DNA of 64,000 nucleotides from Adineta vaga (lineage: Eukaryota > Animalia > Rotifera), in assembly GCA_021613535.1 (NCBI GenBank), contig CP075493.1:17980001-18044000 (forward strand), given 5' to 3'. The position numbers and the translations under genes are program-made. Of the stretch, positions 1-52,073 are shown piece after piece; within the stretch, counting starts at the first letter, position 1; each line of letters begins with the position of its first letter. The notes below the pieces were generated by a model. That model made no database searches. It had not been told where the DNA came from and was given only the letters and a program-made list of their open reading frames with translations.

Positions 1-1229
1 TTTATAACAGTAAAAAGTAGCAATTTGACAAGTAAAAAATCCAAATTTGATTAGTAAATAATGCATGTTGTACCAACAGAAAAAAAAGATCGATCTGTAA
101 GACACACCCGAGCACGAGACGAAGAATCTAATTGAAGCCGTCTAAAATTCGAATCACTGCAGCATCAAAGCTGGTTTAGCTTTTGCTGGCCGGCCACTCT
201 TTCGTTTTTCACCGATCGGCACTGTCTTGGCTGGTGATGGTGGTCTGCAGTACTTCAAGCGAATAGCCATCCCAACAACGTGCTTGCAAACATAGTTTTT
301 CAAAAAGGCCGGGCAGTTGCATTTTGATTTCTTCCAGTCTGTATCATTCGGCATTTCTAAACACCATATATCATAGGATTTCTTGAACTGATTAAAGGTA
401 GTCCATTTTCTATTGATATATTTATTTACATCAGTTTGTGTAATATCTTGTATATCACGAGCTGGTATATAATGTTTTTGAACCATCATTCGGATAGAAG
501 ATTACATCTGTTGATGACTTGTCCATTGATATGAAGAAGTCCATAGCTTTAAACTTATCGTCGCTTCTATGACAAAAACTTTTGCATTTATTGAAGTGGA
601 ATCACGTTCTATTGACCAGTTGTGAACAATCCTTGAAGCTATTGCTAAAAATCTCGATAAGACATAACGTTCTTGGAAAGTCCCTTCATCTTTTATTGTC
701 TTGTTGGCTGTCTCCAGGATTTTGTTCGTAATCGGTGTATATAACTGGATACCTTCGTACCAACCGTTATTGGATTCAATCCATTCTTTGTCGAAATACG
801 ACAGATTTTCTTGTTTCTGGTACGTCCTCCTCTACTAAATCACTTTCGTATGAAGCACCTCGTGCAGCTTCCATCGGTTTTACTTGTTAGCACCGAGATG
901 GACGTGAAAGAAAGGATAGAAATAACGAATATGATGGCTGGATTTATAGTTGAATCTCGCGATTACAGAGAAATAAAAAAAAGTAGCCATCAGTCACTGT
1001 ACGACTTATTGCAATTTCTACAGTGATCCTTGCATATAATCTCCTAATAATGTATTTTATTTACTGATTATCAAATTAATTAACTATACAATCTCTTGAA
1101 CTACTGTTCCTTTATATTGTTTACTGACAGTTCAACTTCTTTACTGATCATTCATCCAATTAACTGATTTTGAAATATTTCATCTCACTGATCATACCAT
1201 ATTTTCTACTGATAAACTAAATCCATGCC
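1..1229 (-). mobile_element. Intronic MULE (Mutator-like) remnant with SWIM zinc-finger transposase C-terminus, truncated by the window edge
   Basis: ORF 154-489 has [14 protein letters not shown] (SWIM) and a KRKSGRP AT-hook-like tail. Same sequence as the complete copies downstream. Confidence 0.75.
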
Positions 1230-1497
1230 TAATTTAACGGGATCGAGCCGCAACAAGTTTGCTTCGATTGAAACATGAATAAGGTTCAGACAAAAAAGAA
1301 TCATGGTCCCGTCAGATCTGAATCCATCGATATCATAAACCCATACCATTGTAGTATCCACTTAACTGTATTTAACTATACGATGAATGTTGGATCAAAG
1401 GCGACAGACAATCATTTTTGCAGTGCGATCGACCATGATCATGCTTCTTCTTCTTCTTCTCATTTGTTCTTTTTCATCGTCGCCATCGTCGTCGTAG

Positions 1498-24600: not shown

Positions 24601-27600
24601 ATGCTTAGCTCGTCCTTATCGAACCCCTCCCTAGATCTTTGTCTTCGCTTTCTTTCTTTCTCATCTCTGTGTCTTTACACAAACATACTTTTTCATCTCT
24701 AACGAACATTCTCTCTCTCTCACTTGTGCACCTAATCTATGATCTGGCATCGAACCGACACAACGTACAGTATTAGAATACAAACTTCCATGTCGGCTTT
24801 CCACCAAAAAAAGAAAAAAACAAGTGAAGTTCAGCTAGATGCCGTCTAATTCCACTACACACACGTTTGAAGATAATCTTTAGTAAACTTGAAAATAAGC
24901 AGAGTTCGATGCCATCAGAATGGGTTTTATTCTTCAAAATCGGGATCGTCGCGAACACCAACCTGATGAAGAATTTACCGGGATCGAATCTCCATGGAAC
25001 AGATTCGCTTCGACTAAAACATGAATAAGGTTCAGACAAAAAAGAATCATGGTCCCGTCAGATCTGAATCCATCGATATCATAAACCCATACCATTGTAG
25101 TATCCACTTAACTGTATTTAACTATACGATGAATGTTGGATCAAAGGCGACAGACAATCATTTTTGCAGTGCGATCGACCATGATCATGCTTCTTCTTCT
25201 TCTTCTTCTTCTCATTTGTTCTTTTTCATCGTCGCCATCGTCGTCGTAGCACCAGCATCCTTTGCTCAAGCTCGTATCTGGCTCGATGAACGACTTCGAT
25301 TCGATCCAGACCATCCACAAGTGGCTATCTACAATATGCCTTTCGTCTATCGTCTTTCTCCACACGACACTCTCTCGATTCAACAACTTCATCATGCTCT
25401 ACAACTTGTTGTCAACAAACATCCATCACTTCATACAGCACTCGTCTTTGATTCTGACAAACATCAACTCATTCAAAGAATTCTTTCTCACAAAGATAAC
25501 AACAACGACAACAGAACTCTCTTCTCCTTTACTCAAAGTACTTATGAAACAGATGAAGAACTCCATGATATCTTACATGATGAACGAAGAAACACGCAAC
25601 ATTTCGATCTCGATCATGGTCTTGTCTTTCGATGTCATCTCGTACATTACAAAGAGATTATCCCATCGAATGATCTTCTTTCTCATCAACATCTTCTCAT
25701 CTTTAGTTTTCATCATGCTTTGTTTGATTTTCTATCGATGAACATCTTTCTTCATGATCTCAATCAAGCATATACCACAAGTCAATTATCCACTGATGAT
25801 GACTATACTACTCTTCGTTATTTCGATTGTATGTTATCCTAGCTTCTCATGTGTACTTTTCTTCTCTACCACATTTTCTTCTCTATTATATTCAGATGCT
25901 GCCATCGAACAACAACTGTCAATGACTGGTGCACAGATGTTCTGGCAGGATACACTTCATGGTTGTCAACTCGATCAACCTCTTTCCTTACCCTATGATC
26001 GACATCGTCTTTCGAATGAACATCGAACTGGTCGTGGAACATCGATTTCCTTCGATCTTGGTCAACATCTGTCACATGACCTTGTCACTTATGCATCATC
26101 AAATCATATCGAACTAGAACATCTAGCTCTTGCAACCTACTATCTCTTCTTATTCAAACTGACCAATGGAGAACAAGATCTATGTATTGGAATGAATACA
26201 CATGGTCGATATCGAAATGAACTTCACTCAATCATTGGCATGTTTGTCAATGCTATACCAGTACGATGTCAACTAGATTCTTGTTGGTCTTTTGCTCAAC
26301 TACTTGAACATATTCGATCGATGATAGTCAACTGTAGAAAATATTCATATTATCCACTTCAACGTATTCTCTCTCAATATCCTCATCTCTCACATCCTGC
26401 ATTTCTCGATACATCATTCGAATTTATCTCATCATCATCATTATCGATGGGAAAAGATGATCGAAATGAGATTATGATTGGTGATAGTCGACTTTCTCTC
26501 CTATCTTTCGTTACGAATATCAATGAAGATGAAGTGATGAACAAGTTTGATTTCATTCTCAGGATTGATCATCATCTGATGACAAATGAACTGTCATGCA
26601 CCCTTTCTGCATCCAACGATTTGTTCAATGTAGAAACTATCTTCCAGATGGCACAAAGATTTCACACAGTAGTCCAACAACTATTCATATCTGTTGATAC
26701 AAGCATGAGGAAACTACTTTCTGAACAATCATTGATGTTGAACAATGAAAGATTACTCATACAATCAATCAATCATACACAAACATCTTTTCCTCCCGTG
26801 AAGTGTATTCATCATGAGTTTGTATGTCAAGTGATAAGACATCCACAGAAACTAGCTGTTGAACTCGATGATCAATCGTTGACATATGCTGAACTGTTGC
26901 ACTATGTGCAACTATTATCGACACGTCTTCTAAGTGATTATAACATCCTTCCAGGTGAAGTGATTTGTCAATGTGTGGAGAGAAGCATATCAATGGTAAG
27001 TAGTTGATCAAAGACATGTGAATGTGAAGTAGAGATTGTTGTTGTTGTTGTTGTGGATGCATAGGTGATTGGAATGATGGCCATCGAAATGGTAGGTGGT
27101 GTTTATTGTCCATTATCACCTCGAGATCCTCAACATAGACTTCATGCACTCCTACAACAAACACAAGCTCGTCTAGTTCTTGTTCATTGGTTGACAATAA
27201 CGAAGACTAACCATGATGATATTGTTGTTTCGTTGGATATTGATACAGTCTTCTCTGATAATGCCACGACGAATGATACTGATATTGATCAATTATCACT
27301 CATCAAAGTATCACGAGAAAATGTTGCTTATGTCGTTTTTACAAGTGGATCAACTGGAACACCTAAGGCAGTCTGTTTGGATTAATATGCACTGAATATC
27401 ATTTAGACTTTATGCTTTCTTCTAGGTTCAAGTTCGACATACAAATTACATACAGTCTATGCACTCAGTGTTTTATGTTAATATGCTTAATAGGAATGAT
27501 ATAATAATACAAATGGCGCAATGTTCTTTCGATACTCATTTACAAGACATATTTGGTTCATTGATATCTGGAGCAACGCTCGTTATGCTTCACCCTGGAG

Positions 27601-30600
27601 AAGCAATGGACTTTGATTATTTGTTTAAGGTTTTCCAGCAGAAACGAATTACATACATAGACAGCGTTCCTAGCTTTCTTCAAAGTCTTTTCACCTATGT
27701 TGAAAACTGTAGCAACCAAAAAACTTTGCAGTATTTGCGGTCAATGATTGTCGGTGGTCTGTAGCTTGCAAATCATGCTCTATGGTTTTTCTTCTATGTC
27801 TCTGATTTTAGGCGAAACATTTCCTGCCAAACTAAGCAGTTTAATTTCAAATAATTTAAACAGAACTTCACAAATATGGAGCAGCTATGGTACAGCAGAA
27901 ATAACTATCGGTTGTACGCTCTTTCTTGTTAAAGCTACATCAAAGACTGATACAGTTCCGATCGGACAGTCACTTCCTAATTATGAATGTGTGGTTCTGG
28001 ATGAACATTCGCAAACGTCTTTGACAAATCAGCCAGGTGAATTGCTTGTCGGAGGTGTAGGTGTATTTGCTGGATATCTTGGACGTGATGATCTGACTGC
28101 CAGGGCACTCATCGAAGTTAATGGTCGGTTATTCTATAGAACAGGTGATATCGTTCGAATAGATGACAGTGGATTGATTCATTACATTGGTCGACAAGAT
28201 CATCAAGTCAAACTTCGAGGACAACGCATTGAACTTGGTGAAATCGAACGATGCCTGCTCAGCATCTCTACCATCTCTGCTTGTGTTGTCATCAAATGGA
28301 ATGATGATCATCTCGTGGCTTATGTTCAATGTTCTCATAACATACACGAACAGCAACTGAGAGAACATTGTCAATCTCATCTTCCACCACATATGATTCC
28401 ATCGTTCTTCGTCATCCTCGAACAACTACCTCTGAATGTCAATGGAAAGATCGATCGAAAACGGCTTCCTTCACCCGATGTCTCGCATCTGTCTTCATCA
28501 GCACATCATACGAATGACGACAATAATGAATTCTCACAACCAACCAATGACATCGAACAGATCATTCATGACATGTGGTGTGATATTCTTCATCAAAAAC
28601 AGATCTCCATCAGCACCAGTCTTTTCACCATCGGTGGTCATTCTCTCCTAGTCATGCAACTCTTTCATCGATACAAGATCGACTTTCATCTAGAATCGAG
28701 TTCTTCCTTTTCCATCTCTACTTTTTTTCAACATCCAACCATCAAAGAACATGCTCATCTCATTCATCAGACTCGCAACATCCACACCGAAGATGTCGAT
28801 CATCATCAATGGCTCCCACTACATGTCACTCGAGGTAGTTTACATCATGTATTTGTCTTCATCATCCACTCCCTTTTCTGTTTGTGTTCTAGCAAGAGCA
28901 TCCTATGCACAGGAACGTATCTTCTTAGATGAACACATTCGTTTCTCCTCATCCACAAATACCACCCATTATCGTATTCATCATAATATCTATGTCATTC
29001 CATTATTGTATCGTCTCTCATCTTCTCATTCTCATCTTTCAATCTCAAGACTACGTTATGCACTGCATAGTCTCATCATCAGACACAACACTCTTCGAAC
29101 AGCACTCTACCTAGATGATGTCGATGGTAGTATTGTACAAGAATGCTTCGATCAATCTCGCATTAGCAATGATATGATATCATGTCGATTTATTGTTCTT
29201 GATCTTCACAACAATAACGATAAGGATTGCGAGCGACAGGAGATTGTCGAGGATATACTCAATCAAGTGGATCTCTTTGATCTATCTAAAGGACATGTCA
29301 TCAATTGTCATCTTCTTCTCGGACATCATCCTTCTCCAGAGGATGATGATTTGTTGAATGAAAACGATTGGATCTTATTTACTCTCCATCATGCAGCATT
29401 TGATGGAGCATCCACATCGATCTTTCTTCGTGATCTTGCTCTTGCTTATGATCAAGATGAGAACTTCTTGGTTGAGACTAATGCATTGCAATACATCGAC
29501 TATTCTGTACATGAACATTGCATGGATATGACATTATCTCGACAATTCTGGCATGATCAACTGCAAGGATATGATCTGCAAAGTCGACTAGCATTGCCGG
29601 TTGATCGACATCGTGCTTCAGCTGATCAGCGCTCTGGACTGGCGTCATCTATTCAAGTGACACTCGATGATGACATATGTACATCCTTTCTTCACTATGC
29701 ATCATCACATCATCTCACTCTCTTTCAACTTGGCTTAGCTACATTCTATGCATTTCTCTTTCGACTAACTCATGGTCACAGTGATCTATGTGTATCTTCG
29801 ATTAATGCTAATCGATATCGAAATGAACTTGTCAATATATGATAGGCATGTTTGTGTCAACATTACCATATCGTCTTCACATCGATGATCATCAATGGTC
29901 CTTTGGTGAACTTGTCCGACATGTGCAAGAGAAATGTGTATCTATTCTAGAACATTCTCATTATCCATTACAAGAACTCTTCTCTCACTTTCATGTCAAT
30001 CAATCGAATGTTGGATTTCTCGAAACGGTGTTTGATCTAATACATGTGTCTCCTGAACAAACACAGTTATCTTTGGGTGAAACAAACTTAGAACAAATAT
30101 CATCAGACATATCATATCGAATGGCGAAATTTGATATCATGTTCACATTGGTTTATGATCGAACATGGCATGATGAGCGATTATCATGCAGTTTTGTCTG
30201 TTCACAAGATTTGTTTGATCAGGCATCCGTTACACTTCTAAGTCAAAGACTAGTACACTTCTATCGGCAGCTGTTCTTATCTGATGGCGGTGGTGGTAGA
30301 ATGGAGAGTTGGTCATTACCTTTATGTGATCTAGTTCTCATTCTACCGGAAGAAGCTAGAGAAATAGAAGACATTGTGTTTTGTCCACAACTACATGTGA
30401 TAGATGAAGGTATGTGTGATTGTTCGATGACTTTTGTTCAAATATGCACATGGATATCGGAGAAGATGCGAACTGTCTGTAGAGAAGTGTGCGAATATGT
30501 AAGAATCAACATGATACTTGAGAATGACATCTGATAAATGCTAAGAAAACGAATTGTGAGCGTTAGAATTGATATTAGTAGTAAAGATTAATTTGTGAAT

Positions 30601-33600
30601 CAAGGTATATTCATGTCTATTGTTTGACAACTCAGGATGCTGTTCGGTGTCGGTGTACATAAGGTTCTTTCTTGATGAGTACCTTGGATTGGATCCATTC
30701 CATTCTTTGTCGAAATAAGACTTCTTTTGATTTTCAACAGATGAAAGCTTGATCATAAGTAAGATAAAAGTTTTCTTACCTAGGCTATTATGTTTCGGTT
30801 TAGATTCACTTTGGAATGACAGATGGACGTGAAAGTATATATACGAAATAATATGTAGATGTCATTCAATTGTCGATCTTCTTGCTCTGAGAAAGATATG
30901 ATATATCATGGTATTATCTTCTACCATATGAAATACGGCTTTGATAACATTGCAGATGATTTCATAGAAGATTATCATACATTTTGTCTACTGATTATCA
31001 TATAGAAATCATAAAGCTACGTGTTCCTTTTATTACTGATGCATTTAATCAAATCGAATAATCCGATTCCAGTACATTCTCTCATCTAATGGAAGCGACA
31101 GAGTAATATGGCATTTTTCAGGGAGTGTGGGAAACTCTGAGGATTGTTTTTATGTATTTCCAGCTGATCATCTTTCATCGTACAGATCTTAACTGAAATA
31201 GGTCAAATATTGCTATTTCTACTGATATTTTCTTACTGCCTACTATCGACGTACTCACTTGTGTTTTATCTTGATTGCAGTGAGTCTCCCTGCTTCGAGA
31301 AACAATAGATCAATTTTGAAGATGGGTCCAAGTGATTCTTCCCGTCAGATGCTATTGAGTCATAAGGTGTAAAGACATACCATTGTAGTATCCCATAAGC
31401 TCGGTATACGATGAATGTTGGATCAAAGGCGACAGACAATCATTTTACAGTATTAAACACCATGTATGCTTCTTCTTCTTCTTCTTCTCATTTGTGCATC
31501 GTCGCCATCGTCGTAGCACCAGCATCCTTTGCTCAAGCTCGAATTTGGCTCGATGAACGACTTCGATTCGATCCACACAAGCCACAAGTGAGCATCTCCA
31601 ACATCCCCTTCGTCTATCGTCTCCCACTAGCCAACACTCTCTCCGTTCGACAACTTCATCGTGCTCTACAGCTCGTCGTCAACAAACATCCATCACTTCA
31701 CACAGCACTCATCTTCGACCCACACACAAATGAACTCATCCAAAGAATCATCTCTCACAAACATGACGACCACGACGACGGCGAAACTCTCTTCTCCTTT
31801 ACTCAAAGTACTTATGAAACAGATGAAGAACTCCATGATATCTTACATGATGAACGAAGAAACACGCAACATTTCGATCTCGATCATGGTCTTGTCTTTC
31901 GATGTCATCTCGTACATTACAAAGAGATTATTCCATCGAATGATCTTCTCTCTCACCAAGATCTCCTGATCTTCAATTTTCATCGTGCTCTCTTTGATTT
32001 TCTATCGATGAACATCTTTCTTCATGATCTCAATCAAGCATACACCACAGATCAACTATCAACCGCAACAACGAATGACACCATCACTCTACGCTATCTC
32101 GATTGTATGTCGACATATGCGTTGTTCTTTCCTCACTCATTCATCATTCTTGTGTGTTTGATTTAGATGCTGTCATCGAACATCAACTGTCAATGACTGG
32201 TGCACAGATGTTCTGGCAGGATACACTTCATGGTTGTCAACTCGATCAACCTCTTTCCTTACCCTATGATCGACATCGTCTTTCGAATGAACATCGAACT
32301 GGTCGTGGAACATCGATTTCCTTCGATCTTGGTCAACATCTGTCACATGACCTTGTCACTTATGCATCATCACATGACATCTCACTGCAACAGCTTACCT
32401 TTTCTCTGTATTTCACATTCCTGTTCAAGTTGACGAATGCACAAACGGATCTATGTGTTGGAATGAATGTCAGCAATCGATATCGAGATGAACTTCGATC
32501 CGTTGTTGGAATGTTTGAGAATATTATTCCATTGAGATGTCAACTCGATACACATTGGTGTTTCGCTCAACTGATGAATAATGTTCGAAAGATGATGACC
32601 AATGCAATGAAATATTCCTATTATCCTGTTGAACGTCTTCTATGTGATCAACATCTTCATCTTTCACATGCTACGTTTCACCATACAGCATTTGAATTTC
32701 TTTCATTATCATCATCGTTGTTGAAGAGGGTAGATGGTAAGAATGTAATCGAGATAGGTGGTAGTCGAATGTCTTTGATAGCATTATCAATGAAAATGAA
32801 TGAAGATCAAGATCAAGATGAAGTGATGAGTCAATGGGATCTCTCTCTTGTTCTTCATCATCATGATATTCAGTCGAATGGAGTGTCATGTGTGATTCAT
32901 GCATCCCTTGATTTATTCGATCGAGAAACACTGGTATTGATCTCACAACGATTTCATTCCTTCGTCCATCAACTACTCGTTTCTTCTGTTGACAATCAAA
33001 CAAACAGACCAATCTATGAACTATCGTTAACATTATTACATGAAAGATTACTCGCACAATCAGTGAATAACACCGAAGTCTCATACTCTCCCGTGATGTG
33101 TATTCATCATGAGTTTGTATGTCAAGTGATAAGACATCCACAGAAACTAGCTGTTGAACTCGATGATCAATCGTTGACATATGCTGAACTGTTGCACTAT
33201 GTGCAACTATTATCGACACGTCTTCTAAGTGATTATAACATCCTTCCAGGTGAAGTGATTTGTCAATGTGTGGAGAGAAGCATATCAATGGTAAGTAGTT
33301 GATCAAAGACATGTGAATGTGAAGTAGAGATTGTTGTTGGTGTTAATGAATAGGTGATTGGAATAATGGCAATTGAGATGATAGGTGGTGTTTATTGCCC
33401 ACTGTCACCTCGAGATCCTCCACATCGTCTTCATGCACTTCTGCAACAAACACAAGCTCGTCTAGTTCTTGTTCATTGGTTAACAGCAGACAAGTTTCAC
33501 GATGCAATGCCTTCACTTGATATTAATATCATCTCCTTTGCGAATAATATGCGTCAGGCTGTTGATGTTCATCGTTGGGATGATGTCATAGTTACTCCCA

Positions 33601-36600
33601 GTCATGTGGCCTATATCATTTTCACTAGTGGTTCAACTGGAACACCCAAGGCGGTTTGTTGAGTTACAGTGAAGTGGCATTTGTGCTCAGTTGTTTCGTT
33701 TCTCATTCTAGATACAAGTTCGACATACGAACTTTGTTAACTGTATGCATTCGTTGACATTCAATGGCACATTTTATGAAAATGATACGGCTATACAGAT
33801 GGCACGATGTTCATTTGACATTCATGTTCAAGAAATACTTGGTATCTTGACATATGGTGCCACCCTGGTGATGCTTCATCCTCGAGGAACTCTAGATTTA
33901 GAATATCTGTCACACATCATGCATGAGAAACAAATCACATACCTGCATGCGGTGCCAACTTTACTCCAGAGTCTGTTCGCCTTTCTCGATCGCTCACACA
34001 GCTCTTATGTCGTGAAGTATCTTCGATCAGTATGCAGTAGTGGTGAGCGGCTGATTAAATAATTTCAGTTCTATTCTGACATTCAATATCTGATCTATTA
34101 CAGGTGAACCTTTCCCGGTGAAATTGACCGATCTCATAGCAAAAGCTAGTACAGCAAACTGTAATGTATGGAATTTATATGGGCCAGCAGAAATAACTAT
34201 CGGTTGTACGCTCTTTCTTGTTAAAGCTACATCAAAGACTGATACAGTTCCGATCGGACAGTCACTTCCTAATTATGAATGTGTGGTTCTGGATGAACAT
34301 TCGCAAACGTCTTTGACAAATCAAGAAGGTGAATTGTTTGTCGGAGGTGTAGGTGTATTTGCTGGATATCTTGGACGTGATGATCTGACTGCCAGGGCAC
34401 TCATCGAAGTTAATGGTCGGTTATTCTATAGAACAGGTGATATCGTTCGAATAGATGACAGTGGATTGATTCATTACATTGGTCGACAAGATCATCAAGT
34501 CAAACTTCGAGGACAACGCATTGAACTTGGTGAAATCGAACGATGCCTGCTCAGCATCTCTACCATCTCTGCTTGTGTTGTCATCAAATGGAATGATGAT
34601 CATCTCGTGGCTTATGTTCAATGTTCTCATAACATACACGAACAGCAACTGAGAGAACATTGTCAATCTCATCTTCCACCACATATGATTCCATCGTTCT
34701 TCGTCATCCTCGAACAACTACCTCTGAATGTCAATGGAAAGATCGATCGAAAACGGCTTCCTTCACCCGATGTCTCGCATCTGTCTTCATCAGCACATCA
34801 TACGAATGACGACAATAATGAATTCTCACAACCAACCAATGACATCGAACAGATCATTCATGACATGTGGTGTGATATTCTTCATCAAAAACAGATCTCC
34901 ATCAGCACCAGTCTTTTCACCATCGGTGGTCATTCTCTCCTAGTCATGCAACTCTTTCATCGATACAAGATCGACTTTCATCTAGAATCGAGTTCTTCCT
35001 TTTCCATCTCTACTTTTTTTCAACATCCAACCATCAAAGAACATGCTCATCTCATTCATCAGACTCGCAACATCCACACCGAAGATGTCGATCATCATCA
35101 ATGGCTCCCACTACATGTCACTCGAGGTAGTTTACATCATGTATTTGTCTTCATCATCCACTCCCTTTTCTGTTTGTGTTCTAGCAAGAGCATCCTATGC
35201 ACAGGAACGTATCTTCTTAGATGAACACATTCGTTTCTCCTCATCCACAAATACCACCCATTATCGTATTCATCATAATATCTATGTCATTCCATTATTG
35301 TATCGTCTCTCATCTTCTCATTCTCATCTTTCAATCTCAAGACTACGTTATGCACTGCATAGTCTCATCATCAGACACAACACTCTTCGAACAGCACTCT
35401 ACCTAGATGATGTCGATGGTAGTATTGTACAAGAATGCTTCGATCAATCTCGCATTAGCAATGATATGATATCATGTCGATTTATTGTTCTTGATCTTCA
35501 CAACAATAACGATAAGGATTGCGAGCGACAGGAGATTGTCGAGGATATACTCAATCAAGTGGATCTCTTTGATCTATCTAAAGGACATGTCATCAATTGT
35601 CATCTTCTTCTCGGACATCATCCTTCTCCAGAGGATGATGATTTGTTGAATGAAAACGATTGGATCTTATTTACTCTCCATCATGCAGCATTTGATGGAG
35701 CATCCACATCGATCTTTCTTCGTGATCTTGCTCTTGCTTATGATCAAGATGAGAACTTCTTGGTTGAGACTAATGCATTGCAATACATCGACTATTCTGT
35801 ACATGAACATTGCATGGATATGACATTATCTCGACAATTCTGGCATGATCAACTGCAAGGATATGATCTGCAAAGTCGACTAGCATTGCCGGTTGATCGA
35901 CATCGTGCTTCAGCTGATCAGCGCTCTGGACTGGCGTCATCTATTCAAGTGACACTCGATGATGACATATGTACATCCTTTCTTCACTATGCATCATCAC
36001 ATCATCTCACTCTCTTTCAACTTGGCTTAGCTACATTCTATGCATTTCTCTTTCGACTAACTCATGGTCACAGTGATCTATGTGTATCTTCGATTAATGC
36101 TAATCGATATCGAAATGAACTTGTCAATATGATAGGCATGTTTGTGTCAACATTACCATATCGTCTTCACATCGATGATCATCAATGGTCCTTTGGTGAA
36201 CTTGTCCGACATGTGCAAGAGAAATGTGTATCTATTCTAGAACATTCTCATTATCCATTACAAGAACTCTTCTCTCACTTTCATGTCAATCAATCGAATG
36301 TTGGATTTCTCGAAACGGTGTTTGATCTAATACATGTGTCTCCTGAACAAACACAGTTATCTTTGGGTGAAACAAACTTAGAACAAATATCATCAGACAT
36401 ATCATATCGAATGGCGAAATTTGATATCATGTTCACATTGGTTTATGATCGAACATGGCATGATGAGCGATTATCATGCAGTTTTGTCTGTTCACAAGAT
36501 TTGTTTGATCAGGCATCCGTTACACTTCTAAGTCAAAGACTAGTACACTTCTATCGGCAGCTGTTCTTATCTGATGGCGGTGGTGGTAGAATGGAGAGTT

Positions 36601-39600
36601 GGTCATTACCTTTATGTGATCTAGTTCTCATTCTACCGGAAGAAGCTAGAGAAATAGAAGACATTGTGTTTTGTCCACAACTACATGTGATAGATGAAGG
36701 TATGTGTGATTGTTCGATGACTTTTGTTCAAATATGCACATGGATATCGGAGAAGATGCGAACTGTCTGTAGAGAAGTGTGCGAATATGTAAGAATCAAC
36801 ATGATACTTGAGAATGACATCTGATAAATGCTAAGAAAACGATGATATTAATAGATTATTTGTAGAAACTTTGCTGTCTAGCGGTTTAGCAGTAATTGGA
36901 CTATTTCCTCAGTTGAGTGTTGTAGAGTGACGAGCAGTTTTTACTTCTGAAACATTTTCTTTCGTATTAAGTGTAATTCATGAGAGTTTCTCTTGTCCTT
37001 TCTACTTATGCACATAAGTATAGGCTAAACATATTTCACAAGTGTATTCGTAAGAGGAAGACTGTCTGAAATGTTTCTGTCGTCGGCTACAAGATGCTAT
37101 GCGTTTGGATGAGTGTCCCTCAGTGTGAATGGGGTTACACGCATGGAATAGACCCAGTTCGTATTTTGATGCGTTCTAGCAGGGAATTCGATTCGTTTTG
37201 CGCTTCTCTTCATGCATACAGAGGAGAACTAGTCGGTAGTTTTATCTACCTTCCTGGCTTTGTTTTCTGGTAAGAAGCGGAAATGATTTTGATCAGAGAC
37301 AGAACTACTTATTATAAGATTACAAAAAACTACACATTAATCGCAAAACCATGATAAAAATAGTCATCTACAAACGGTACAGTGTGATTCGATGAAAGCT
37401 GGTATTATATAGTGAACTGAAATAAGAAGACAGGCCAGAGACTATCTGCGTAGTGTGATGGATTAAAAGAGCGAATTGAAAAACAAAAGAAGGATATCGA
37501 GCACCAAGGATGAAAAGCCACATCTATATAGGTGATAGCAACAAGTATCTTAATATACACATTTCAGTGTAAGATGTGTTGATCATAAGTCATATGATTG
37601 TTTTGTTTCCTTGCTATCCTCAACTAAATACTTCATTGTTCCACACGCGCATTTTCCTGGATCTTTGTCTTTGTTTTCTTTCTTTCTCATTTCTATGTAC
37701 ACCAGTACAAACACACCTGTTCACCTCCAATCGACAATCCCTCTTCCACTTGAGCGACTAGTCTAAGACATGACATCGAACCGACAGAACATACAACATT
37801 AGAATAAAAACTTCCATCACGGAAGTTCCATGTGGCAGCTTCCTACCAACCAATCATACAATGAAAACACAAGCGAAATTCAGTTAGATACCGTCTGATT
37901 CGACACATCAGCATGAAAATATTGTGAAGTAAACTGAGAAGCAAGTAGAATTGAACGAGATCACAGTGGGTTTCATTCTTGAAAATCAGAATCGTCGGCA
38001 ACACAAATGCCAAGGAATAATTTATCGGGAACAAATTTATTGACCGGTTAAACAGATGAAATGATCAGTAATAAAATGGATAAATGATCAGTTCGAAGTT
38101 TGAATGATCGGTGCTTAGAATAGCAGTAAATAATATGAAAATGATCAGTCTATAATATGAACCATCCGTAAAGACATCATATTTATAACAGTAAAAAGTA
38201 GCAATTTGACAAGTAAAAAATCCAAATTTGATTAGTAAATAATGCATGTTGTACCAACAGAAAAAAAAGATCGATCTGTAAGACACACCCGAGCACGAGA
38301 CGAAGAATCTAATTGAAGCCGTCTAAAATTCGAATCACTGCAGCATCAAAGCTGGTTTAGCTTTTGCTGGCCGGCCACTCTTTCGTTTTTCACCGATCGG
38401 CACTGTCTTGGCTGGTGATGGTGGTCTGCAGTACTTCAAGCGAATAGCCATCCCAACAACGTGCTTGCAAACATAGTTTTTCAAAAAGGCCGGGCAGTTG
38501 CATTTTGATTTCTTCCAGTCTGTATCATTCGGCATTTCTAAACACCATATATCATAGGATTTCTTGAACTGATTAAAGGTAGTCCATTTTCTATTGATAT
38601 ATTTATTTACATCAGTTTGTGTAATATCTTGTATATCACGAGCTGGTATATAATGTTTTTGAACCATCATTCGGATAGAAGATTACATCTGTTGATGACT
38701 TGTCCATTGATATGAAGAAGTCCATAGCTTTAAACTTATCGTCGCTTCTATGACAAAAACTTTTGCATTTATTGAAGTGGAATCACGTTCTATTGACCAG
38801 TTGTGAACAATCCTTGAAGCTATTGCTAAAAATCTCGATAAGACATAACGTTCTTGGAAAGTCCCTTCATCTTTTATTGTCTTGTTGGCTGTCTCCAGGA
38901 TTTTGTTCGTAATCGGTGTATATAACTGGATACCTTCGTACCAACCGTTATTGGATTCAATCCATTCTTTGTCGAAATACGACAGATTTTCTTGTTTCTG
39001 GTACGTCCTCCTCTACTAAATCACTTTCGTATGAAGCACCTCGTGCAGCTTCCATCGGTTTTACTTGTTAGCACCGAGATGGACGTGAAAGAAAGGATAG
39101 AAATAACGAATATGATGGCTGGATTTATAGTTGAATCTCGCGATTACAGAGAAATAAAAAAAAGTAGCCATCAGTCACTGTACGACTTATTGCAATTTCT
39201 ACAGTGATCCTTGCATATAATCTCCTAATAATGTATTTTATTTACTGATTATCAAATTAATTAACTATACAATCTCTTGAACTACTGTTCCTTTATATTG
39301 TTTACTGACAGTTCAACTTCTTTACTGATCATTCATCCAATTAACTGATTTTGAAATATTTCATCTCACTGATCATACCATATTTTCTACTGATAAACTA
39401 AATCCATGCCTAATTTAACGGGATCGAGCCGCAACAAGTTTGCTTCGATTGAAACATGAATAAGGTTCAGACAAAAAAGAATCATGGTCCCGTCAGATCT
39501 GAATCCATCGATATCATAAACCCATACCATTGTAGTATCCACTTAACTGTATTTAACTATACGATGAATGTTGGATCAAAGGCGACAGACAATCATTTTT

Positions 39601-42600
39601 GCAGTGCGATCGACCATGATCATGCTTCTTCTTCTTCTTCTTCTTCTCATTTGTTCTTTTTCATCGTCGCCATCGTCGTCGTAGCACCAGCATCCTTTGC
39701 TCAAGCTCGTATCTGGCTCGATGAACGACTTCGATTCGATCCAGACCATCCACAAGTGGCTATCTACAATATGCCTTTCGTCTATCGTCTTTCTCCACAC
39801 GACACTCTCTCGATTCAACAACTTCATCATGCTCTACAACTTGTTGTCAACAAACATCCATCACTTCATACAGCACTCGTCTTTGATTCTGACAAACATC
39901 AACTCATTCAAAGAATTCTTTCTCACAAAGATAACAACAACGACAACAGAACTCTCTTCTCCTTTACTCAAAGTACTTATGAAACAGATGAAGAACTCCA
40001 TGATATCTTACATGATGAACGAAGAAACACGCAACATTTCGATCTCGATCATGGTCTTGTCTTTCGATGTCATCTCGTACATTACAAAGAGATTATCCCA
40101 TCGAATGATCTTCTTTCTCATCAACATCTTCTCATCTTTAGTTTTCATCATGCTTTGTTTGATTTTCTATCGATGAACATCTTTCTTCATGATCTCAATC
40201 AAGCATATACCACAAGTCAATTATCCACTGATGATGACTATACTACTCTTCGTTATTTCGATTGTATGTTATCCTAGCTTCTCATGTGTACTTTTCTTCT
40301 CTACCACATTTTCTTCTCTATTATATTCAGATGCTGCCATCGAACAACAACTGTCAATGACTGGTGCACAGATGTTCTGGCAGGATACACTTCATGGTTG
40401 TCAACTCGATCAACCTCTTTCCTTACCCTATGATCGACATCGTCTTTCGAATGAACATCGAACTGGTCGTGGAACATCGATTTCCTTCGATCTTGGTCAA
40501 CATCTGTCACATGACCTTGTCACTTATGCATCATCAAATCATATCGAACTAGAACATCTAGCTCTTGCAACCTACTATCTCTTCTTATTCAAACTGACCA
40601 ATGGAGAACAAGATCTATGTATTGGAATGAATACACATGGTCGATATCGAAATGAACTTCACTCAATCATTGGCATGTTTGTCAATGCTATACCAGTACG
40701 ATGTCAACTAGATTCTTGTTGGTCTTTTGCTCAACTACTTGAACATATTCGATCGATGATAGTCAACTGTAGAAAATATTCATATTATCCACTTCAACGT
40801 ATTCTCTCTCAATATCCTCATCTCTCACATCCTGCATTTCTCGATACATCATTCGAATTTATCTCATCATCATCATTATCGATGGGAAAAGATGATCGAA
40901 ATGAGATTATGATTGGTGATAGTCGACTTTCTCTCCTATCTTTCGTTACGAATATCAATGAAGATGAAGTGATGAACAAGTTTGATTTCATTCTCAGGAT
41001 TGATCATCATCTGATGACAAATGAACTGTCATGCACCCTTTCTGCATCCAACGATTTGTTCAATGTAGAAACTATCTTCCAGATGGCACAAAGATTTCAC
41101 ACAGTAGTCCAACAACTATTCATATCTGTTGATACAAGCATGAGGAAACTACTTTCTGAACAATCATTGATGTTGAACAATGAAAGATTACTCATACAAT
41201 CAATCAATCATACACAAACATCTTTTCCTCCCGTGAAGTGTATTCATCATGAGTTTGTATGTCAAGTGATAAGACATCCACAGAAACTAGCTGTTGAACT
41301 CGATGATCAATCGTTGACATATGCTGAACTGTTGCACTATGTGCAACTATTATCGACACGTCTTCTAAGTGATTATAACATCCTTCCAGGTGAAGTGATT
41401 TGTCAATGTGTGGAGAGAAGCATATCAATGGTAAGTAGTTGATCAAAGACATGTGAATGTGAAGTAGAGATTGTTGTTGTTGTTGTTGTGGATGCATAGG
41501 TGATTGGAATGATGGCCATCGAAATGGTAGGTGGTGTTTATTGTCCATTATCACCTCGAGATCCTCAACATAGACTTCATGCACTCCTACAACAAACACA
41601 AGCTCGTCTAGTTCTTGTTCATTGGTTAACAGCAGACAAGTTTCACGATGCAATGGCTTCACTTGATATTAATATCATCTCCTTTGCGAATAATATGCGT
41701 CAGGCTGTTGATGTTCATCGTTGGGATGATGTCATAGTTACTCCCAGTCATGTGGCCTATATCATTTTCACTAGTGGTTCAACGGGAACGCCTAAAGCAG
41801 TATGTCACCGGATCCGATCATTAAATCAATTCTCTCATTATAATCGTTTTTTGTTAGATTCTAGTAACACATTCGAATCTGATGACCTTTACTCAATCGT
41901 TGGTTCAAATTCAGATTCTTCATCGTAATGATAATGTTGTACAGCTCGCTTCTTCGTCATTTGATGCCCATATACTGGAAATTCTTTGTTCTCTGGTTTG
42001 CGGAGCAGCAGTGATTATGCTGCATCCAGATGGGAATATGAATTTTGGCTATTTTACTGAGACACTGCGAGACAAGGAAGTCACACATTTGACAGCTGTT
42101 CCAACGTTTCTCGACCATTTGTGTAAATTTATCCAGCAGAATATGTCTAGATTGTTTACATTAATAAGAAATGTTTGTTGTGTTGGTGAGTAACCGGAGA
42201 GTATGTGAAACAATTTGAGATCACATCCGTCTTGTATATAGGAGAGACCCTCTCGCCGATCTTAGTTCTGACTTTGATGCATCACATCATGGAACCTTGT
42301 TGTATTTGGAACTTATATGGTCCAGCAGAGGCTACACTAGGAAGCACATATTATCTGTTTGATCCGACTTATAATACAGCTAACGTATCTATTGGTAAAC
42401 CCTTTCCTGGTTACATATGTTTACTGGTGGATCATTTCTTACAACCTGTTGCAGTCTATCAAGAAGGTGAATTGTATGTAGGAGGAGTAGGTATCTTTGC
42501 CGGATATCTTGGACGCGATGATCTCACAGCCAAAGCACTAATTGATATTGATGGTGAAGTCTTCTATCGAACAGGTGATCTCGTTCGAATGGATGACAGT

Positions 42601-44111
42601 GGATTGATTCATTACATTGGTCGACAAGATCATCAAGTCAAACTTCGAGGACAACGCATTGAACTTGGTGAAATCGAACGATGCCTGCTCAGCATCTCTA
42701 CCATCTCTGCTTGTGTTGTCATCAAATGGAATGATGATCATCTCGTGGCTTATGTTCAATGTTCTCATAGTATACATGAACAGCAACTGAGAGAACATTG
42801 TCAATCTCATCTTCCACCACATATGATTCCATCGTTCTTCGTCATCCTCGAACAACTACCTCTGAATGTCAATGGAAAGATCGATCGAAAGCGTCTTCCT
42901 GTACCTCAGTTTTCATTATCGACTTCTTTAGCATTGGATGCTTTGTTAGCGCCTAAAACGCGTTTAGAACAATCTGTAGAAGGTGTTTGGCGTCAAATTC
43001 TCCAATGTGATGAAAAGTTTATATCCACAACCGCAAACTTCTTTGACGTTGGTGGCTATTCACTTCTCTTCATTCAACTGTATTATCGCTATCAGTCGTT
43101 GTTTGGTTTTGGTGCCCATTTACCTGCAATTGCTCTTTTTTCTTCAACAACCAACCATTCAACAACATGCACAGTTGCTTGAAAATAGGCTTCTATCCAA
43201 GGATATGTACGTTAAACGATGGCACGCATCAGATACAGAGCAAGGTAGGACATTTTTGATCAGAAAAAAGCAACGAAACTGATCGCTCTTTTGGTTTCAC
43301 CTTGAGACGTTGCTGTTTCCGCTCGTGCTCCTTTCTTTTTTGATGAGGAAGCTTGTTGTCCGCATGAATTTGCCGTCTGTTTAGATGATTTTGAGCATCC
43401 GTTTGTTTTATTCAATGAAAATGCCGATAATATTTTGTTCATTTTGCCGCCTGGTGAAGGTGGTGCCGAAAGCTACTTTAACAACATTGTGCCTCATTTA
43501 TCGCGATTTAGACTAGTAATATTCAACAATTACTATATGGATCTTAAAAGAAAAAATATGGGAAACGATCTGTCGTTTGAAACATTAGCTCCTGTGTATA
43601 CATAAAGTATATAAAGCAGATTCAACACAACGGTCCGTATAACTTTCTAGGCTGGAGTTTTGGTGGCATCTTGTCTTTTGAAATTTCTCGCCAGTTAAAC
43701 AATGCTGGCGAGAAAATTCGTAATGTCTTTATGATCGACTCATACTTTAATTTGATGAAGGCTTTGTGTGACATTGGCAACACAGATAAGATGGAAGTGT
43801 ATGTTACTGATCAAATACAAGGCACCTATCTACCGATAGTAAACAATGAACCATTTGGATTAAGTTTGCCCAATAGAACAACGAACATTGTATTGTTCAA
43901 AGCCAACAAGGTAGATGAACGCTTTACATCAGACGATTACCTGAAATTAAGCGAATACTATTGCAATTCATCATTTAATAATCTTGACACAATAGTGAAT
44001 CATGAATACATTCAAGTATTTCAAATGTATGACGATAGCCATGAGTCTTGGAAATTTAATAAAGAGCAAATTGTCCACATGTGCGATTATGTAACAAGTT
44101 TATTAAAATAA
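1498..44111 (+). CDS. Giant intron-containing multimodular NRPS, 5'-incomplete: [C1-A-T-C2]x5 + C1-A-T-TE, roughly 9,400 aa within the window
   Basis: Core motifs recur in every unit: [16 protein letters not shown], HHxxx[15 protein letters not shown] (A3), SFD (A4), NLYGPAE (A5), GELxVGGVG (A6), YRTGD (A7), [20 protein letters not shown] (A8), LPPHMIP (A9), NGKIDR (A10), GGHSLL (T), and GWSFG (TE) at the end. Each C2 exon ends GAA G|gtatgt and each next C1 exon starts cgtag|CA CCA GCA, giving an in-frame ...E-APASFAQ join. The only natural stop is at 44109-44111, followed by AATAAA. Four 1-2 nt frameshifts interrupt the reading as assembled. Confidence 0.88.
7988..9372 (-). mobile_element. 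Internally deleted MULE element in NRPS inter-unit intron
   Basis: SWIM ORF 8296-8631. 9-bp TSD TAATTTATC/TAATTTAAC. Degenerate TIRs with (A)TGATCAGT and ACTGATCA subterminal repeats. The homologous site at about 24970-24990 lacks the insertion. Confidence 0.8.
9647..14809 (+). CDS. NRPS unit 2 (C1-A-T-C2); exons 9647-10225, 10293-11392, 11462-11761, 11821-12151, 12212-13237, 13296-14809
   Basis: Near-identical to unit 1 except around the A pocket and intron 4. Code DIQHCSLIDK. A 1-nt deletion (GG to G) at about 13773 frameshifts C2. Confidence 0.88.
16137..17521 (-). mobile_element. MULE remnant, co-duplicated copy
   Basis: Near-identical to 7988-9372 with the same flanks; SWIM ORF 16445-16750. 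Confidence 0.8.
17796..22882 (+). CDS. NRPS unit 3 (C1-A-T-C2 with divergent A core, T and C2)
   Basis: Same intron positions (exon 4 19969-20296, exon 5 20353-21354, exon 6 21419-22882). Code DALTCVLLGK, T motif LGGHSLL, C2 motif HHAAFDR. Confidence 0.88.
23479..24033. repeat. Foldback inverted repeat (about 245-bp arms, about 65-bp spacer) in the unit 3/4 intron
   Basis: 23479-23722 is the reverse complement of about 23788-24033 with few mismatches. This explains the mirror ORFs 23587-23832(-) and 23680-23925(+). Confidence 0.9.
24289..24501. mobile_element. Small CACTG-terminus MITE with TA target duplication
   Basis: TA|CACTGTAAAA...TTTTAACAGGG|TA, with an internal inverted pair GAATTTGCAACGTATAA / TTATACGTTGCAGATTC. 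Confidence 0.55.
25250..30409 (+). CDS. NRPS unit 4 (C1-A-T-C2)
   Basis: C1, T and C2 match units 1/2, while the A core is unique from about 27190. Code DTQDIGSIGK. An extra AT at about 29837-29840 frameshifts C2. Confidence 0.88.
30650..31260 (-). mobile_element. Older, diverged MULE-related fragment in the unit 4/5 intron
   Basis: Shares CCATTCTTTGTCGAAATA, GATGGACGTGAAAG and TACTGAT repeats with the 1.4-kb MULE. Boundaries approximate. Confidence 0.5.
31517..36699 (+). CDS. NRPS unit 5 (divergent mosaic C1, A, T, C2)
   Basis: Same exon layout. C1 motif HRALFDF, code DIQHCSLIGK. T and C2 match unit 1, and the C2 exon is intact. Confidence 0.88.
38027..39410 (-). mobile_element. MULE remnant, co-duplicated copy
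   Basis: Near-identical to 7988-9372 with the same flanks; SWIM ORF 38335-38670. Confidence 0.8.
39685..43244 (+). CDS. NRPS terminal unit 6 (C1-A-T)
   Basis: C1-A essentially identical to unit 3 (code DALTCVLLGK). Unique T domain with VGGYSLL. An extra T in the run at about 43136-43141 shifts the frame. Donor CAA G|gtagga at 43244/43245. Confidence 0.85.
43307..44111 (+). CDS. Terminal exon: ACV-synthetase (PcbAB)-type thioesterase domain
   Basis: Manual translation gives [19 protein letters not shown]...FNNYY...[27 protein letters not shown]...IDSYFN...IVLFKA...DDSHESW. Catalytic Ser codon at 43656-43658. An extra TA at about 43597-43600 shifts the frame. The acceptor at 43306 is inferred. 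Confidence 0.88.
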
Positions 44112-44122
44112 ATCACCAAGAG

Positions 44123-44128
44123 AATAAA
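44123..44128 (+). promoter_or_regulatory. Probable polyadenylation signal of the NRPS gene
   Basis: AATAAA 12 nt after the TE stop codon. Confidence 0.5.
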
Positions 44129-44160
44129 TACGGTAATATAGTAACTTGTTAACTCATAAG

Positions 44161-46491
44161 GTGTGCATGAGGCAGAATTCGGCGAGAAGACAAATCTGGA
44201 TAGATCACACCTCAGTCGACAGAACTTTTTGCGCTGGCTAAGAATATGCGTCTTTCTATCTTTCTAACCTTCTAACCTTCCCGTAGTCGACTAAATTGCA
44301 ATACACAAGTGTTTTCAGAGGATTCAGAAAAGCTGCTCTTCGACTACAAGTTTCACGGCTGATATGTATGTCGAACTAGACTTTTCTCAACGAAAGTGTT
44401 TCATCTCATTCAGATACATCGAACTATAGCATCGAGATCAGTTTCATGCAATTTTATCAATCTTATGAGATTTTGCTGGCTTTCAGATATCGACGCTTGG
44501 CTTTGTCGAGACTCTTACTTTGTAAATCTATCTCCTTTTTTCTCGAAAAGCTAAAATGAATATTCCTCTATCATCTGAGCACTTAGATCAATGCGAAAAA
44601 AGTCACGCATGCTCGGGTTGTGATCTCTTGATATTATCGAGAAATGAAAATTTTCTAAAGACGTGGTCTTTCAGAAGGGACTTAATTTTGCATCCTCCTA
44701 ACAAATTAATAACACTCCAAGTTAAGACATTTTTCCGCGGTGGAAAATGTGGTAAAACTTAATCAGTATCATATGAGACCTTGACTGAGCCTTACAAGAC
44801 TCTAGAAACTTATTTGTCAAACACTGCACTGAAAAAAATTTTCGGTGAATAATAAACCCTGGAAAAGGGTTTATAGTGGCAAAATTTGTTTATTAGGGTG
44901 ATCTACCGTTTGATAAACCCGTTTCCCGTTTATAACTGTTCAAGGATTTGCCACCATAAACCCTTTTCCAGGGTTTATTATCCACCGAAAATTTTTTTCA
45001 GTGTGGTTCTCCGGGTGTTCGCACAACACCTCTCGCGTTATAGGATGAATTTCGTCTAACTAGTACTAGATCTGAGAAATAGTTTATTTCTTTGCTTCCG
45101 AAATTCATAATTAAGAATAAATAAGAACAAAAATTACATAAGTGATGTTTGCCTATTTGTTAGTGATCATCTTACAATCTGCACAAACAACGATCGGTGC
45201 AAAAAATAGCTAAACATTTGTGTTCTTTTGTTAGATACGTATACTTTCTTCTCAGATTTGAGTCTGACACGATTTTAAGGTCGAAACGTGTTCAACATGC
45301 ACAGTTTTCTCTTCCAATATGGAGTGGCGCATACAAAAAGAATTGTTTTGTCAATGAAAATTGTCTAACGAAAATTCAAGTGTGTCCTTAAGACTTTTAC
45401 TAATGATACAACATATAATAGAGTATTTCAACTTGTCCTCATTGATCATATAAGTACAATATTGCGCAGTATGAAAAGTGACCTATTCCGATCTCGATCG
45501 GCAATATACTTTTTTCTTTATTCTAAAATAACCTTTCGTTTTCTTAAACTCAAGAAAAACTGCAAATCTAAAAGTCGATGTGTTGTCACACTTTCCAGGA
45601 AAAGGGAATGTTTATCTCTCAATAATCCTTTTTTCCAATCATATCCCCTTCTTTTTTACTTTTTATAAAGCACTAATCTAGGAACTGAGGGTTAATAAAG
45701 ACGCGTAAAATAATATATTAGTGGAGCTCTGAAATGATCTCTTATTACTGTTTATTTAACTCGATGATTTTTAATATGAAATAATGATGAGTAAACACCA
45801 CGAAATTCACAAAATCTCTAGAAACCAGTGTTTGACAAATAAGTTTCTAGAGTCTTGTAAGGCTCAGTCAAGGTCTCATATGATACTGATTAAGTTTTAC
45901 CACATTTTCCACCGCGGAAAAATGTCTTAACTTGGAGTGTTATTAATTTGTTAGGAGGATGCAAAATTAAGTCCCTTCTGAAAGACCACGTCTTTAGAAA
46001 ATTTTCATTTCTCGATAATATCAAGAGATCACAACCCGAGCATGCGTGACTTTTTTCGCATTGATCTAAGTGCTCAGATGATAGAGGAATATTCATTTTA
46101 GCTTTTCGAGAAAAAAGGAGATAGATTTACAAAGTAAGAGTCTCGACAAAGCCAAGCGTCGATATCTGAAAGCCAGCAAAATCTCATAAGATTGATAAAA
46201 TTGCATGAAACTGATCTCGATGCTATAGTTCGATGTATCTGAATGAGATGAAACACTTTCGTTGAGAAAAGTCTAGTTCGACATACATATCAGCCGTGAA
46301 ACTTGTAGTCGAAGAGCAGCTTTTCTGAATCCTCTGAAAACACTTGTGTATTGCAATTTAGTCGACTACGGGAAGGTTAGAAGGTTAGAAAGATAGAAAG
46401 ACGCATATTCTTAGCCAGCGCAAAAAGTTCTGTCGACTGAGGTGTGATCTATCCAGATTTGTCTTCTCGCCGAATTCTGCTTCATGCACAC
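44161..46491. repeat. Long inverted repeat or foldback element (arms 44161-44826 and 45826-46491, 666 bp)
   Basis: Arms are near-perfect reverse complements; the same spurious 68-aa ORF appears on both strands. About 1 kb non-coding spacer and no obvious TSD. Confidence 0.92.
44827..45003. mobile_element. 177-bp CACTG...CAGTG MITE (CMC/CACTA-like) nested at the inner end of the left arm
   Basis: About 60-bp TIRs and TG duplicated on both sides. Removing it extends the outer inverted repeat (ACTGGTT). Confidence 0.8.
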
Positions 46492-47116
46492 GGAGCAAAA
46501 GGAAATAAACAGAAATTTTAAGTTTATTTTTAGTTTTTAGTTTTGTTCCGAACTGAACGCATTATATTGAAAGCATCCATACATTTGTTTTTCATGCAAC
46601 CAGTGATCCTTATGTTTCAAGTTTCGCAATTCATCTTATTTTTAATCAGTTTTCTATTTATGATTGTAAAACACTAATAAATATCAATCTTATAATTTTC
46701 CAAACATCATAAACAAGATTTAATAAAAATAAACGGAATACATATTTTCGCGACTTCGGAGAGGATCATGTGAAAAATACTTTGTTTGTGGCTTTGTGTC
46801 TCAGTTTGTGCCAGGGTGAAAAAATCATTGGATGGATAAATCTAGGAATAAAAATCGGCTTTTGAATCTGTCTGGTCCGAATTCGGATCAACGAGATTTT
46901 AGGTGGGGTTTGCTTCAGAAATTTTTGGATGAACTCTATTAGTTGCTTAGACCAACTTGAGGTTATCGATGATGCTGTTTCAGATGAGGTATATATCAAG
47001 GGGATCTGTACTAACAGAGACCGACTTTCGATTCTCATCGGCTGAAGTTCTGACCAATCAGTTCTCAAGAAGGTTTTTGGCACTATTTGTCAGGGTGTGA
47101 TGCTGAGTGGTTAGCT

Positions 47117-52021: not shown

Positions 52022-52073
52022 TGTAATCGTTTGAATAAGTTGAGATTAAATAATGTAATAAATAAGTGCGAAC

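Follow-up and report, generated by a model that had tools for sequence, protein, structure and literature searches.

A thioesterase of the ACV synthetase type, probably grafted onto an eight-module peptide synthetase array of Adineta vaga, a bdelloid rotifer

An array of nonribosomal peptide synthetase (NRPS) modules in Adineta vaga, a rotifer of the bdelloid group, ends in a thioesterase (TE) that probably has a different origin from the modules that it follows. The array lies in the stretch of 64,000 nucleotides that was analysed here (the window; assembly GCA_021613535.1, contig CP075493.1, positions 17,980,001 to 18,044,000 of the forward strand). We take window positions 43385-44108 to encode a release domain of the TE subfamily found in ACV synthetases (ACVS), grafted onto the Adineta array from what was likely a bdelloid ACVS-like gene, and broken in the haplotype that the assembly represents; we would give this reading a probability of about 0.78. 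The array is part of a cluster that is already known, region1.9 (Chrom_1:17942949..18035224 of the A. vaga Av20 assembly; Nowell et al. 2024, Supplementary Data 9, PMC11258130), and its thioesterase, the kinship of that domain and the junction are new details. Domains are abbreviated below as A (adenylation), T (thiolation), C (condensation; C1 and C2 in this array) and E (epimerisation). The features on which the argument turns are these:

43245..43384, plus strand: a 140-nt phase-1 intron between T and TE, a GT..AG RNA joint (43244>43385) in runs X9 and X11 that is absent from the DNA runs.
43307..43384, plus strand: a decayed stub of the N-terminus of a C2-type condensation domain, in frame after an alternative acceptor at 43305-06; its position matches the T|C2 acceptor of unit 5.
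43385..44111, plus strand: coding part of the terminal exon, an ACVS-family type I thioesterase (PF00975, alignment and trees; RNA contigs cover 43385-44132).
43600..43605, plus strand: a frameshift in the TE, where 2 extra bases (ACA[TA]AAG) create an in-frame TAA before the catalytic serine (frames, contigs and homologue).

By its sequence, 43385-44108 encodes an alpha/beta hydrolase, namely a type I thioesterase. The TE was searched as two separate pieces, and the trees use only the C-terminal one (window 43593-44108). This piece matches the Pfam family PF00975 Thioesterase (E 5.1e-15; 56.7 bits, with a cut-off of 26.4) and finds 139 matches at E<=1e-10 among 1.84 billion representative proteins, the best of them at 7.8e-65; the N-terminal piece alone (72-99 aa) found no match in Pfam or PDB searches. 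The closest relatives with solved structures are the NRPS thioesterases AB3403, NocB and fengycin, with a likeness that is limited to about 50 residues around the serine, and the Ser and Asp regions of the TE align to these solved domains. The catalytic triad consists of Ser 43656-43658 (in GWSFGG), Asp 43737-43739 (in MIDSY) and His 44040-44042 (in DDSHESW), all in alignment columns that ACVS and rotifer TEs conserve. Each of the two TE pieces occurs once in the haploid assembly (100.8 Mb, 6 contigs). The six motif strings that had been picked out in a preliminary description of this DNA are all present in the window and are split over two frames (FNNYY in the frame from 43201, DDSHESW in that from 43203); with the PF00975 match at E 5e-15 their presence is far beyond chance. 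The PcbAB strings with which that description compared them are also genuine, for the Penicillium/Aspergillus ACVS proteins P0173 and P0170 carry (V/I)LFKA and DTHFSW.

Bdelloid proteins lead the matches to the C-terminal piece (53-63% identity, the best being an A. steineri protein). They are followed by many proteins of 3,600-3,800 aa that are matched at their C-terminus and that, from their names and a second search, are ACV synthetases; among them are proteins of A. nidulans, Acremonium, Penicillium, Lysobacter lactamgenus, S. clavuligerus, a tardigrade, sciarid flies and Plectus. The S. clavuligerus protein (P0245) is a genuine pcbAB product, since its gene lies between lat and pcbC. Profile scores are bimodal, with at least 140 bits over the full length for the subfamily and 50-85 bits over part of it for generic TEs. 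In the main tree (maximum likelihood, IQ-TREE, LG+C20 PMSF, 77 rows) a TE subfamily that includes every ACVS TE is split from the generic TEs at 100/99, and FastTree and a quick tree agree with this split. The same tree unites the trimodular ACVS proteins at 96/89 and groups the window TE with A. steineri and two Rotaria TEs at 100/98; together with three short AT-rich fragments these two clades make up a 42-row clade (92/85). Forcing the rotifers beside the Plectus ACVS costs 25.2 log-likelihood units and is not rejected by the approximately unbiased (AU) test (p 0.138), which allows a position inside ACVS as well as one as its sister. By these comparisons the window TE belongs to the subfamily that terminates all ACV synthetases and adjoins the ACVS clade. 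The view that it is of the ACVS kind and not generic has held: the best matches are bdelloid and ACVS proteins, and the domain is not placed among the generic type I TEs.

The ACVS-type motifs are kept along the whole domain (motif table, 77 rows). Like the ACVS TEs of fungi, actinomycetes, Lysobacter and some animals, the window TE has GPYxFxGWSFGG, IDxYFN, IVLFKA, FNxLDT and HxSW, and it is 39-43% identical to fungal ACVS TEs and 53-60% identical to that of Plectus. Generic type I TEs (surfactin SrfA-C, fengycin, NocB, AB3403) share its Pfam family, its order of GxSxG, Asp and His and its place after the last T, but unlike the window TE they fall outside the subfamily (100/99) and resemble it only around the serine. 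The enzyme that it caps is not organised like ACVS, an A-T-C-A-T-C-A-T-E-TE protein of about 3,700 aa; the architecture of region1.9 differs, in that the TE has no epimerisation domain before it and caps an 8-module C1-A-T-C2 line instead of three modules. Almost every member of the subfamily has its TE preceded by an epimerisation-type domain (T-E-TE), unlike the case here. Nearly all ACVS rows, most basal rows and Rotaria have 555-630 aa between the T serine and the TE serine, with HHxxxD between them; A. steineri has 197 aa there and the window TE about 151.

The motifs do not have the specificity for PcbAB that had been attributed to them. They mark a wider subfamily, which also terminates NRPSs with 1-2 modules from uncultured Alphaproteobacteria, Rickettsiales, Legionella and others, so motif matches alone are no evidence for a beta-lactam pathway. 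None of the bacterial TEs in a search of 185,579 species, with one genome per species, is more than 40% identical to the window TE, and a direct bacterial donor was rejected on this count. The subfamily has animal members besides the rotifers. ACVS-like proteins of about 2,600-3,700 aa (P0009, P0208 and P0255) from the tardigrade Paramacrobiotus and the sciarid flies Bradysia and Pseudolycoriella fall in the ACVS clade; animal ACVS from springtails and Plectus has been discussed (PMC10531068). An ENA metagenome contig (L004:1-7816, 30% GC) encodes an AT-rich multi-module NRPS, 40-44% identical to ACVS modules, in which the TE directly follows T with no E domain; the rotifer TEs have this TE as their nearest sister (85/71). 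Overlapping open reading frames (ORFs) on this contig suggest introns or frameshifts.

The structure of the last module was read from contigs of the DNA runs X1 and X2 and of the RNA-type runs X9 and X11, aligned to window 39400-44300. GT..AG joints at 40264-40330, 41430-41498, 41800-41857, 42185-42240 and 43245-43384 occur in X9 and X11 only, and the presence of these five joints there and of none in X1 or X2 indicates that X9 and X11 hold spliced RNA. The RNA evidence takes the form of assembled contigs, which carry neither levels, nor strand, nor a full-length molecule. Upstream and downstream of the junction the features of the last module are as follows:

39685..40263, plus strand: N-terminal portion of the last module's C1 condensation domain (PF00668, E 2.8e-16); acceptor AG at 39683-84, spliced to upstream exons, with the RNA match starting at 39683.
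40331..41429, plus strand: remainder of C1 and start of the A domain (PF00668, E 1.4e-31); joints 40263>40331 and 41429>41499 in X9/X11 only.
41499..42184, plus strand: two A-domain exons, 41499-41799 and 41858-42184, with a 58-nt intron between them (PF00501, E 7e-16 and 1.4e-11; RNA joints 41799>41858 and 42184>42241).
42241..43244, plus strand: C-terminal half of the A domain, AMP-binding_C, the T domain and the T linker (PF00501, PF13193 and PF00550 matches).
44133..46540, plus strand: a 2408-nt intron in the 3' untranslated region (UTR); RNA leaves the window sequence at 44132 and its next 30 letters equal 46541-46570 exactly, with GT at 44133 and AG at 46539-40.

In the spliced RNA no domain stands between T and TE. 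The T-domain serine (GGYS, codon 43060-43062) is about 151 codons ahead of the TE serine (43656-43658), and the stop codon of the TE exon is at 44109-44111. The joint 43244>43385 bears out the earlier observation that the TE sits on a phase-1 exon of its own directly after T, with no E domain; it moves the start of that exon from 43307, as had been given, to 43385, and a start at 43307 would use an alternative acceptor and add 26 in-frame codons. Beyond the stop codon, the 3' UTR intron contains a 2.33-kb foldback element whose 666-bp inverted repeats (44161-44826 and 45826-46491) are 99.85% identical, with the splice sites 28 and 49 nt outside the repeats. A haplotype-specific insertion at 44132 was considered and rejected, since the 30 letters that follow match 46541-46570 with GT/AG borders, as expected of an intron.

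The 78 nucleotides before the TE exon suggest how the domain came to its present place. In the A. steineri protein P0001 the segment ITSSAQKNIFLDEQ stands between T and TE, and this is the N-terminal core motif of the C2 domains of the array; it aligns to C2 N-termini (scores 49-53) and not to the N-termini of ACVS-type E domains (19-28). For this reason we rejected the idea that the stub is what an internal deletion left of an E domain. The stub in the window is a decayed copy of the C2 motif and lies within the T-TE intron (43245-43384), whose donor matches the donor of the T|C2 intron of other units (compared with unit 5). Homology to the sister unit 3 ends at 43173; that to Rotaria sets in precisely at 43384, with the first codon of the TE exon. 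Our reading is that the acceptor at 43307 looks ancestral and that the stub is now skipped in A. vaga through use of the downstream acceptor.

The modules upstream of this junction are of another kinship. The A-T region of the last Adineta module shares 50-75% identity with over 100 other NRPS proteins of Adineta, of which almost all have no TE, and outside the rotifers its best matches are to generic bacterial NRPSs (31-38%); the A and C domains of this module are 22-34% identical to A. nidulans ACVS, which is no better than their identity to generic NRPSs. The preliminary description was therefore right to call the capped assembly line non-ACVS. The condensation-domain stub between T and TE supports a graft, in which the TE would have been fused about 20 codons into a C2 domain of an Adineta-specific array.

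The nearest kin of the window TE, with A. steineri P0001, are the TEs of Rotaria magnacalcarata (P0269, 2549 aa; P0002/P0268, about 1560 aa; P0018), and the Rotaria TEs are 55-59% identical to it. Unlike the Adineta gene, these Rotaria proteins have kept an A-T-E-TE arrangement that is colinear with ACVS modules 2-3, and their genes are intronless. P0269 is colinear with residues 1185-3699 of the ACVS P0200 (47.5% identity over about 2,600 aa; 41% with the S. clavuligerus ACVS), and in its A-T region it shares 50-53% identity with ACVS module 3; the A-T of Rotaria is only about 32% identical to that of the last Adineta module. In a tree of A-T-E-TE (a quick tree, rooted by assumption) Rotaria and all ACVS group at 100 against the non-ACVS members. 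Of the Rotaria loci L095:5900-16354 and L096:4292-8971, both intronless, the first is colinear with ACVS modules 2-3 and the second only with module 3; an inverted partial copy of an ACVS-type C domain lies upstream of the ACVS-like gene in L095. Neither PMC11258130 nor PMC10531068 reports an ACVS in rotifers, and the present analysis points to ACVS-like genes in Rotaria.

It had been suggested that the genome may hold other genes of a beta-lactam pathway. A search of the genome found none. Queried with S. clavuligerus PcbC for isopenicillin N synthase, it returned a best match of 28% identity (E 1e-24) and 2-oxoglutarate-dependent oxygenases at 28-36% only, a generic level; a Rotaria query for an ACVS-type E domain found no match, and an ACVS-type A3-T query found only generic A domains at no more than 39%. 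With all three queries negative at the level of orthologues we rejected a beta-lactam pathway in this genome, and that idea is not supported.

The state of the TE in the assembly needs separate comment. At the place of the frameshift, 43600-43605, A. steineri P0001 reads APVYTKYIK. One DNA contig each in X1 and X2, and both RNA contigs, have 2 bases fewer near 43600; the remaining DNA contigs are the same as the window there, at a depth of 27.8 of 38.4 in X1 and 40 of 71.4 in X2. Because independent short-read-type DNA contigs of two studies carry the 2-base insertion, it is real in one version of the gene, and the proposal that all the frameshifts are assembly errors was rejected for this one. 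The insertion, beyond splicing alone, is also the reason that the list of ORFs missed the TE. In the T domain the window copy has one extra T in a T-run near 43136, and every contig that covers 43136 has one base fewer; since only the other version spans this place, that T could be genuine or an artefact of assembly. That second version of the gene is about 2.4% diverged over 42861-43661, has neither the extra T at 43136 nor the 2 bases near 43600, and also differs by an in-frame 6-nt length difference further on. It is open through T and TE, and it is the version that the spliced RNA contigs carry. Most simply it is the other haplotype, since both TE pieces are single-copy in the assembly. 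Two further frameshifts are found upstream by comparison with unit 1, to which the domains concerned are otherwise 99.9% identical: a 1-nt deletion at 13774 (GG>G) in the C2 domain of unit 2 and a 2-nt insertion at 29835-29836 (AT in an ATAT run) in the C2 domain of unit 4. Lying in 99.9%-identical repeats, these two could be assembly errors; with the T-domain indel they fit the '3 frameshifts' that have been catalogued for the cluster.

Were the TE to work in the manner of its relatives, the TE serine would take over the finished peptidyl chain from the last T domain's phosphopantetheine arm, and the TE would then free it, most likely by hydrolysis to a linear peptide, like its ACVS relatives. 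The peptide of eight modules would hold repeated residues, since several modules are near-identical. As for its origin, the T-E-TE coupling would have been lost in Adineta when the TE was joined to a C2-type domain about 20 residues in, giving T-(C2 stub)-TE; in the present genome the stub leaves the transcript with the old T|C2 intron. The source may have been an ACVS-like gene of bdelloids, such as Rotaria still has. We hold at even odds the fuller history in which a bdelloid ancestor gained an ACVS-like synthetase, of which Rotaria keeps A-T-E-TE and only the TE survives in Adineta, recombined about 20 codons into a C domain. The preliminary description had envisaged a separately acquired ACVS TE that was shuffled onto the array as an exon. 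The graft is supported by the C2 stub and by Rotaria sisters that are colinear with ACVS modules 2-3, and the second horizontal transfer is not, as the source may be a bdelloid ACVS-like gene. Of that description as a whole the observation, the ACVS-family TE and the graft stand; the beta-lactam pathway finds no support, and the motifs have a broader reach than it gave them.

The likeness to ACVS might instead reflect shared ancestry within the subfamily, TE and modules having arrived together from one bacterial donor with a C-A-T-TE end, in which case there was no graft. Members of the subfamily do terminate short bacterial NRPSs of one or two modules (those of uncultured Alphaproteobacteria, Rickettsiales, Legionella and others), and a short spacing from T to TE is found in a few members (P0035, P0103 and P0125) and in L004, whose TE is the sister at 85/71. 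A single donor is nevertheless very unlikely in our estimation: no TE above 40% identity was found in the 185,579 bacterial species, the A-T module is one of an expansion specific to Adineta in which almost every member is without a TE, the Rotaria TEs at 55-59% stand behind an A-T-E of ACVS type with an identity of only about 32% to the Adineta A-T, and a condensation-domain stub separates T from TE. It is also conceivable that the TE exon is a dead relic and the locus a decaying pseudogene in both haplotypes from which no product is released. The four frameshifts of the assembly (13774, 29835-36, ~43136 and ~43600), the '3 frameshifts' flagged in the published catalogue (PMC11258130) and the independent DNA contigs that carry the TE insertion speak for such decay. 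It seems to us unlikely, given that the second version is without the T and TE frameshifts, has a length difference of 6 nt that is in frame and is spliced at all five introns, that Adineta and Rotaria, though 37-45% diverged, have retained the triad and all the subfamily motifs, and that assembly errors may account for the frameshifts in 99.9%-identical repeats.

Several points weigh against a grafted, ACVS-type release domain of bdelloid source, which we continue to prefer. In the best tree the ACVS crown does not include the rotifer TEs. The assembly haplotype is incapable of making an active TE, as the stop precedes the serine, and with four frameshifts across the gene in the assembly the locus may be decaying. 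The direction of the event, graft or loss, is read from a stub that is short and degenerate. The Rotaria genes are intronless and lie on contigs of 9.7 kb and 19 kb, so they may be contamination. The choice of hydrolysis over cyclisation has kinship with ACVS as its single ground, and the RNA contigs give neither an expression level nor full-length continuity.

The remainder of the gene is made of modules that closely resemble one another. Tandem units of about 8.1 kb, up to 99.6% identical in self-comparison, fill the window from position 1 to about 44.1 kb, in AT-rich, eukaryotic DNA with short GT..AG introns. The part upstream of the last module is:

1..39684, plus strand: upstream part of the assembly line, five further C1-A-T-C2 units of about 8.1 kb, 81-99.6% identical pairwise (self-comparison, frames and domains).

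Introns of about 3 kb join these units, and 2 additional modules sit upstream of the window (loci L093 and L094), giving a line of 8 modules of the C1-A-T-C2 type in which the last unit is C1-A-T followed by the TE. At the C2>C1 junction a strong phase-1 donor, GTATGT at 36700, fits the acceptor at 39684; the RNA contigs have 1917 letters upstream of 39683 that find no match on 39400-39682, and A. steineri P0001 shares the C2-to-C1 junction. For these reasons the units appear to be modules of one gene, and the region1.9 gene would be an NRPS of A. vaga of about 60 kb and 8 modules; we infer the single 8-module transcript. The coding sequence (CDS) coordinates published for region1.9 equal those of the window ORFs plus 17,980,000 (for example 18022205-18023182 = 42205-43182; Supplementary Data 9, PMC11258130). 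Its entry there gives '3 frameshifts', puts the length at an estimated 13,683 aa and names no further domain, and its last CDS is the one with a PCP (window 42205-43182), with no TE, TD or NRPS_term listed (PMC11258130). The locus is about 100 kb from the contig end, a position that fits the subtelomeric bias reported in PMC11258130.

Some other features of the window may be recorded here. Every module boundary has two consecutive condensation domains (T-C2-C1-A; for example at 5004-6785 and 9418-11404), and the C1 domains read HHALFDF in place of HHxxxDG. A 1.5-kb stretch of the inter-module introns is present in four copies that are about 100% identical, at 1, 8143, 16292 and 38182. Inside the C2-C1 intron of about 3 kb (36700-39684) the minus strand carries an ORF of 111 aa that has a SWIM zinc finger (38335-38670; PF04434, E 2e-5), and this may be a transposase remnant that was duplicated together with the modules. 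Window 48000-62000 has a GC content of 26-30% and a positive GC skew, compared with 37-41% in the NRPS part; a diverged direct repeat (53612-54309 and 60459-61151) is 66% identical.

Our analysis supplies the missing release domain of a published A. vaga cluster, region1.9, that had appeared unterminated, and it locates the breaks in the reference haplotype. If the reading is right, this is a natural thioesterase swap, in which a TE that had been partnered with an epimerase was uncoupled from it and gave a release domain to an array that otherwise lacks one. It would represent a natural domain graft between two NRPS lineages in an animal genome, with the scar of the junction still visible. A grafted TE from a family that normally stands behind an epimerase may also serve as a test case for the portability of thioesterases, a practical question in NRPS engineering.

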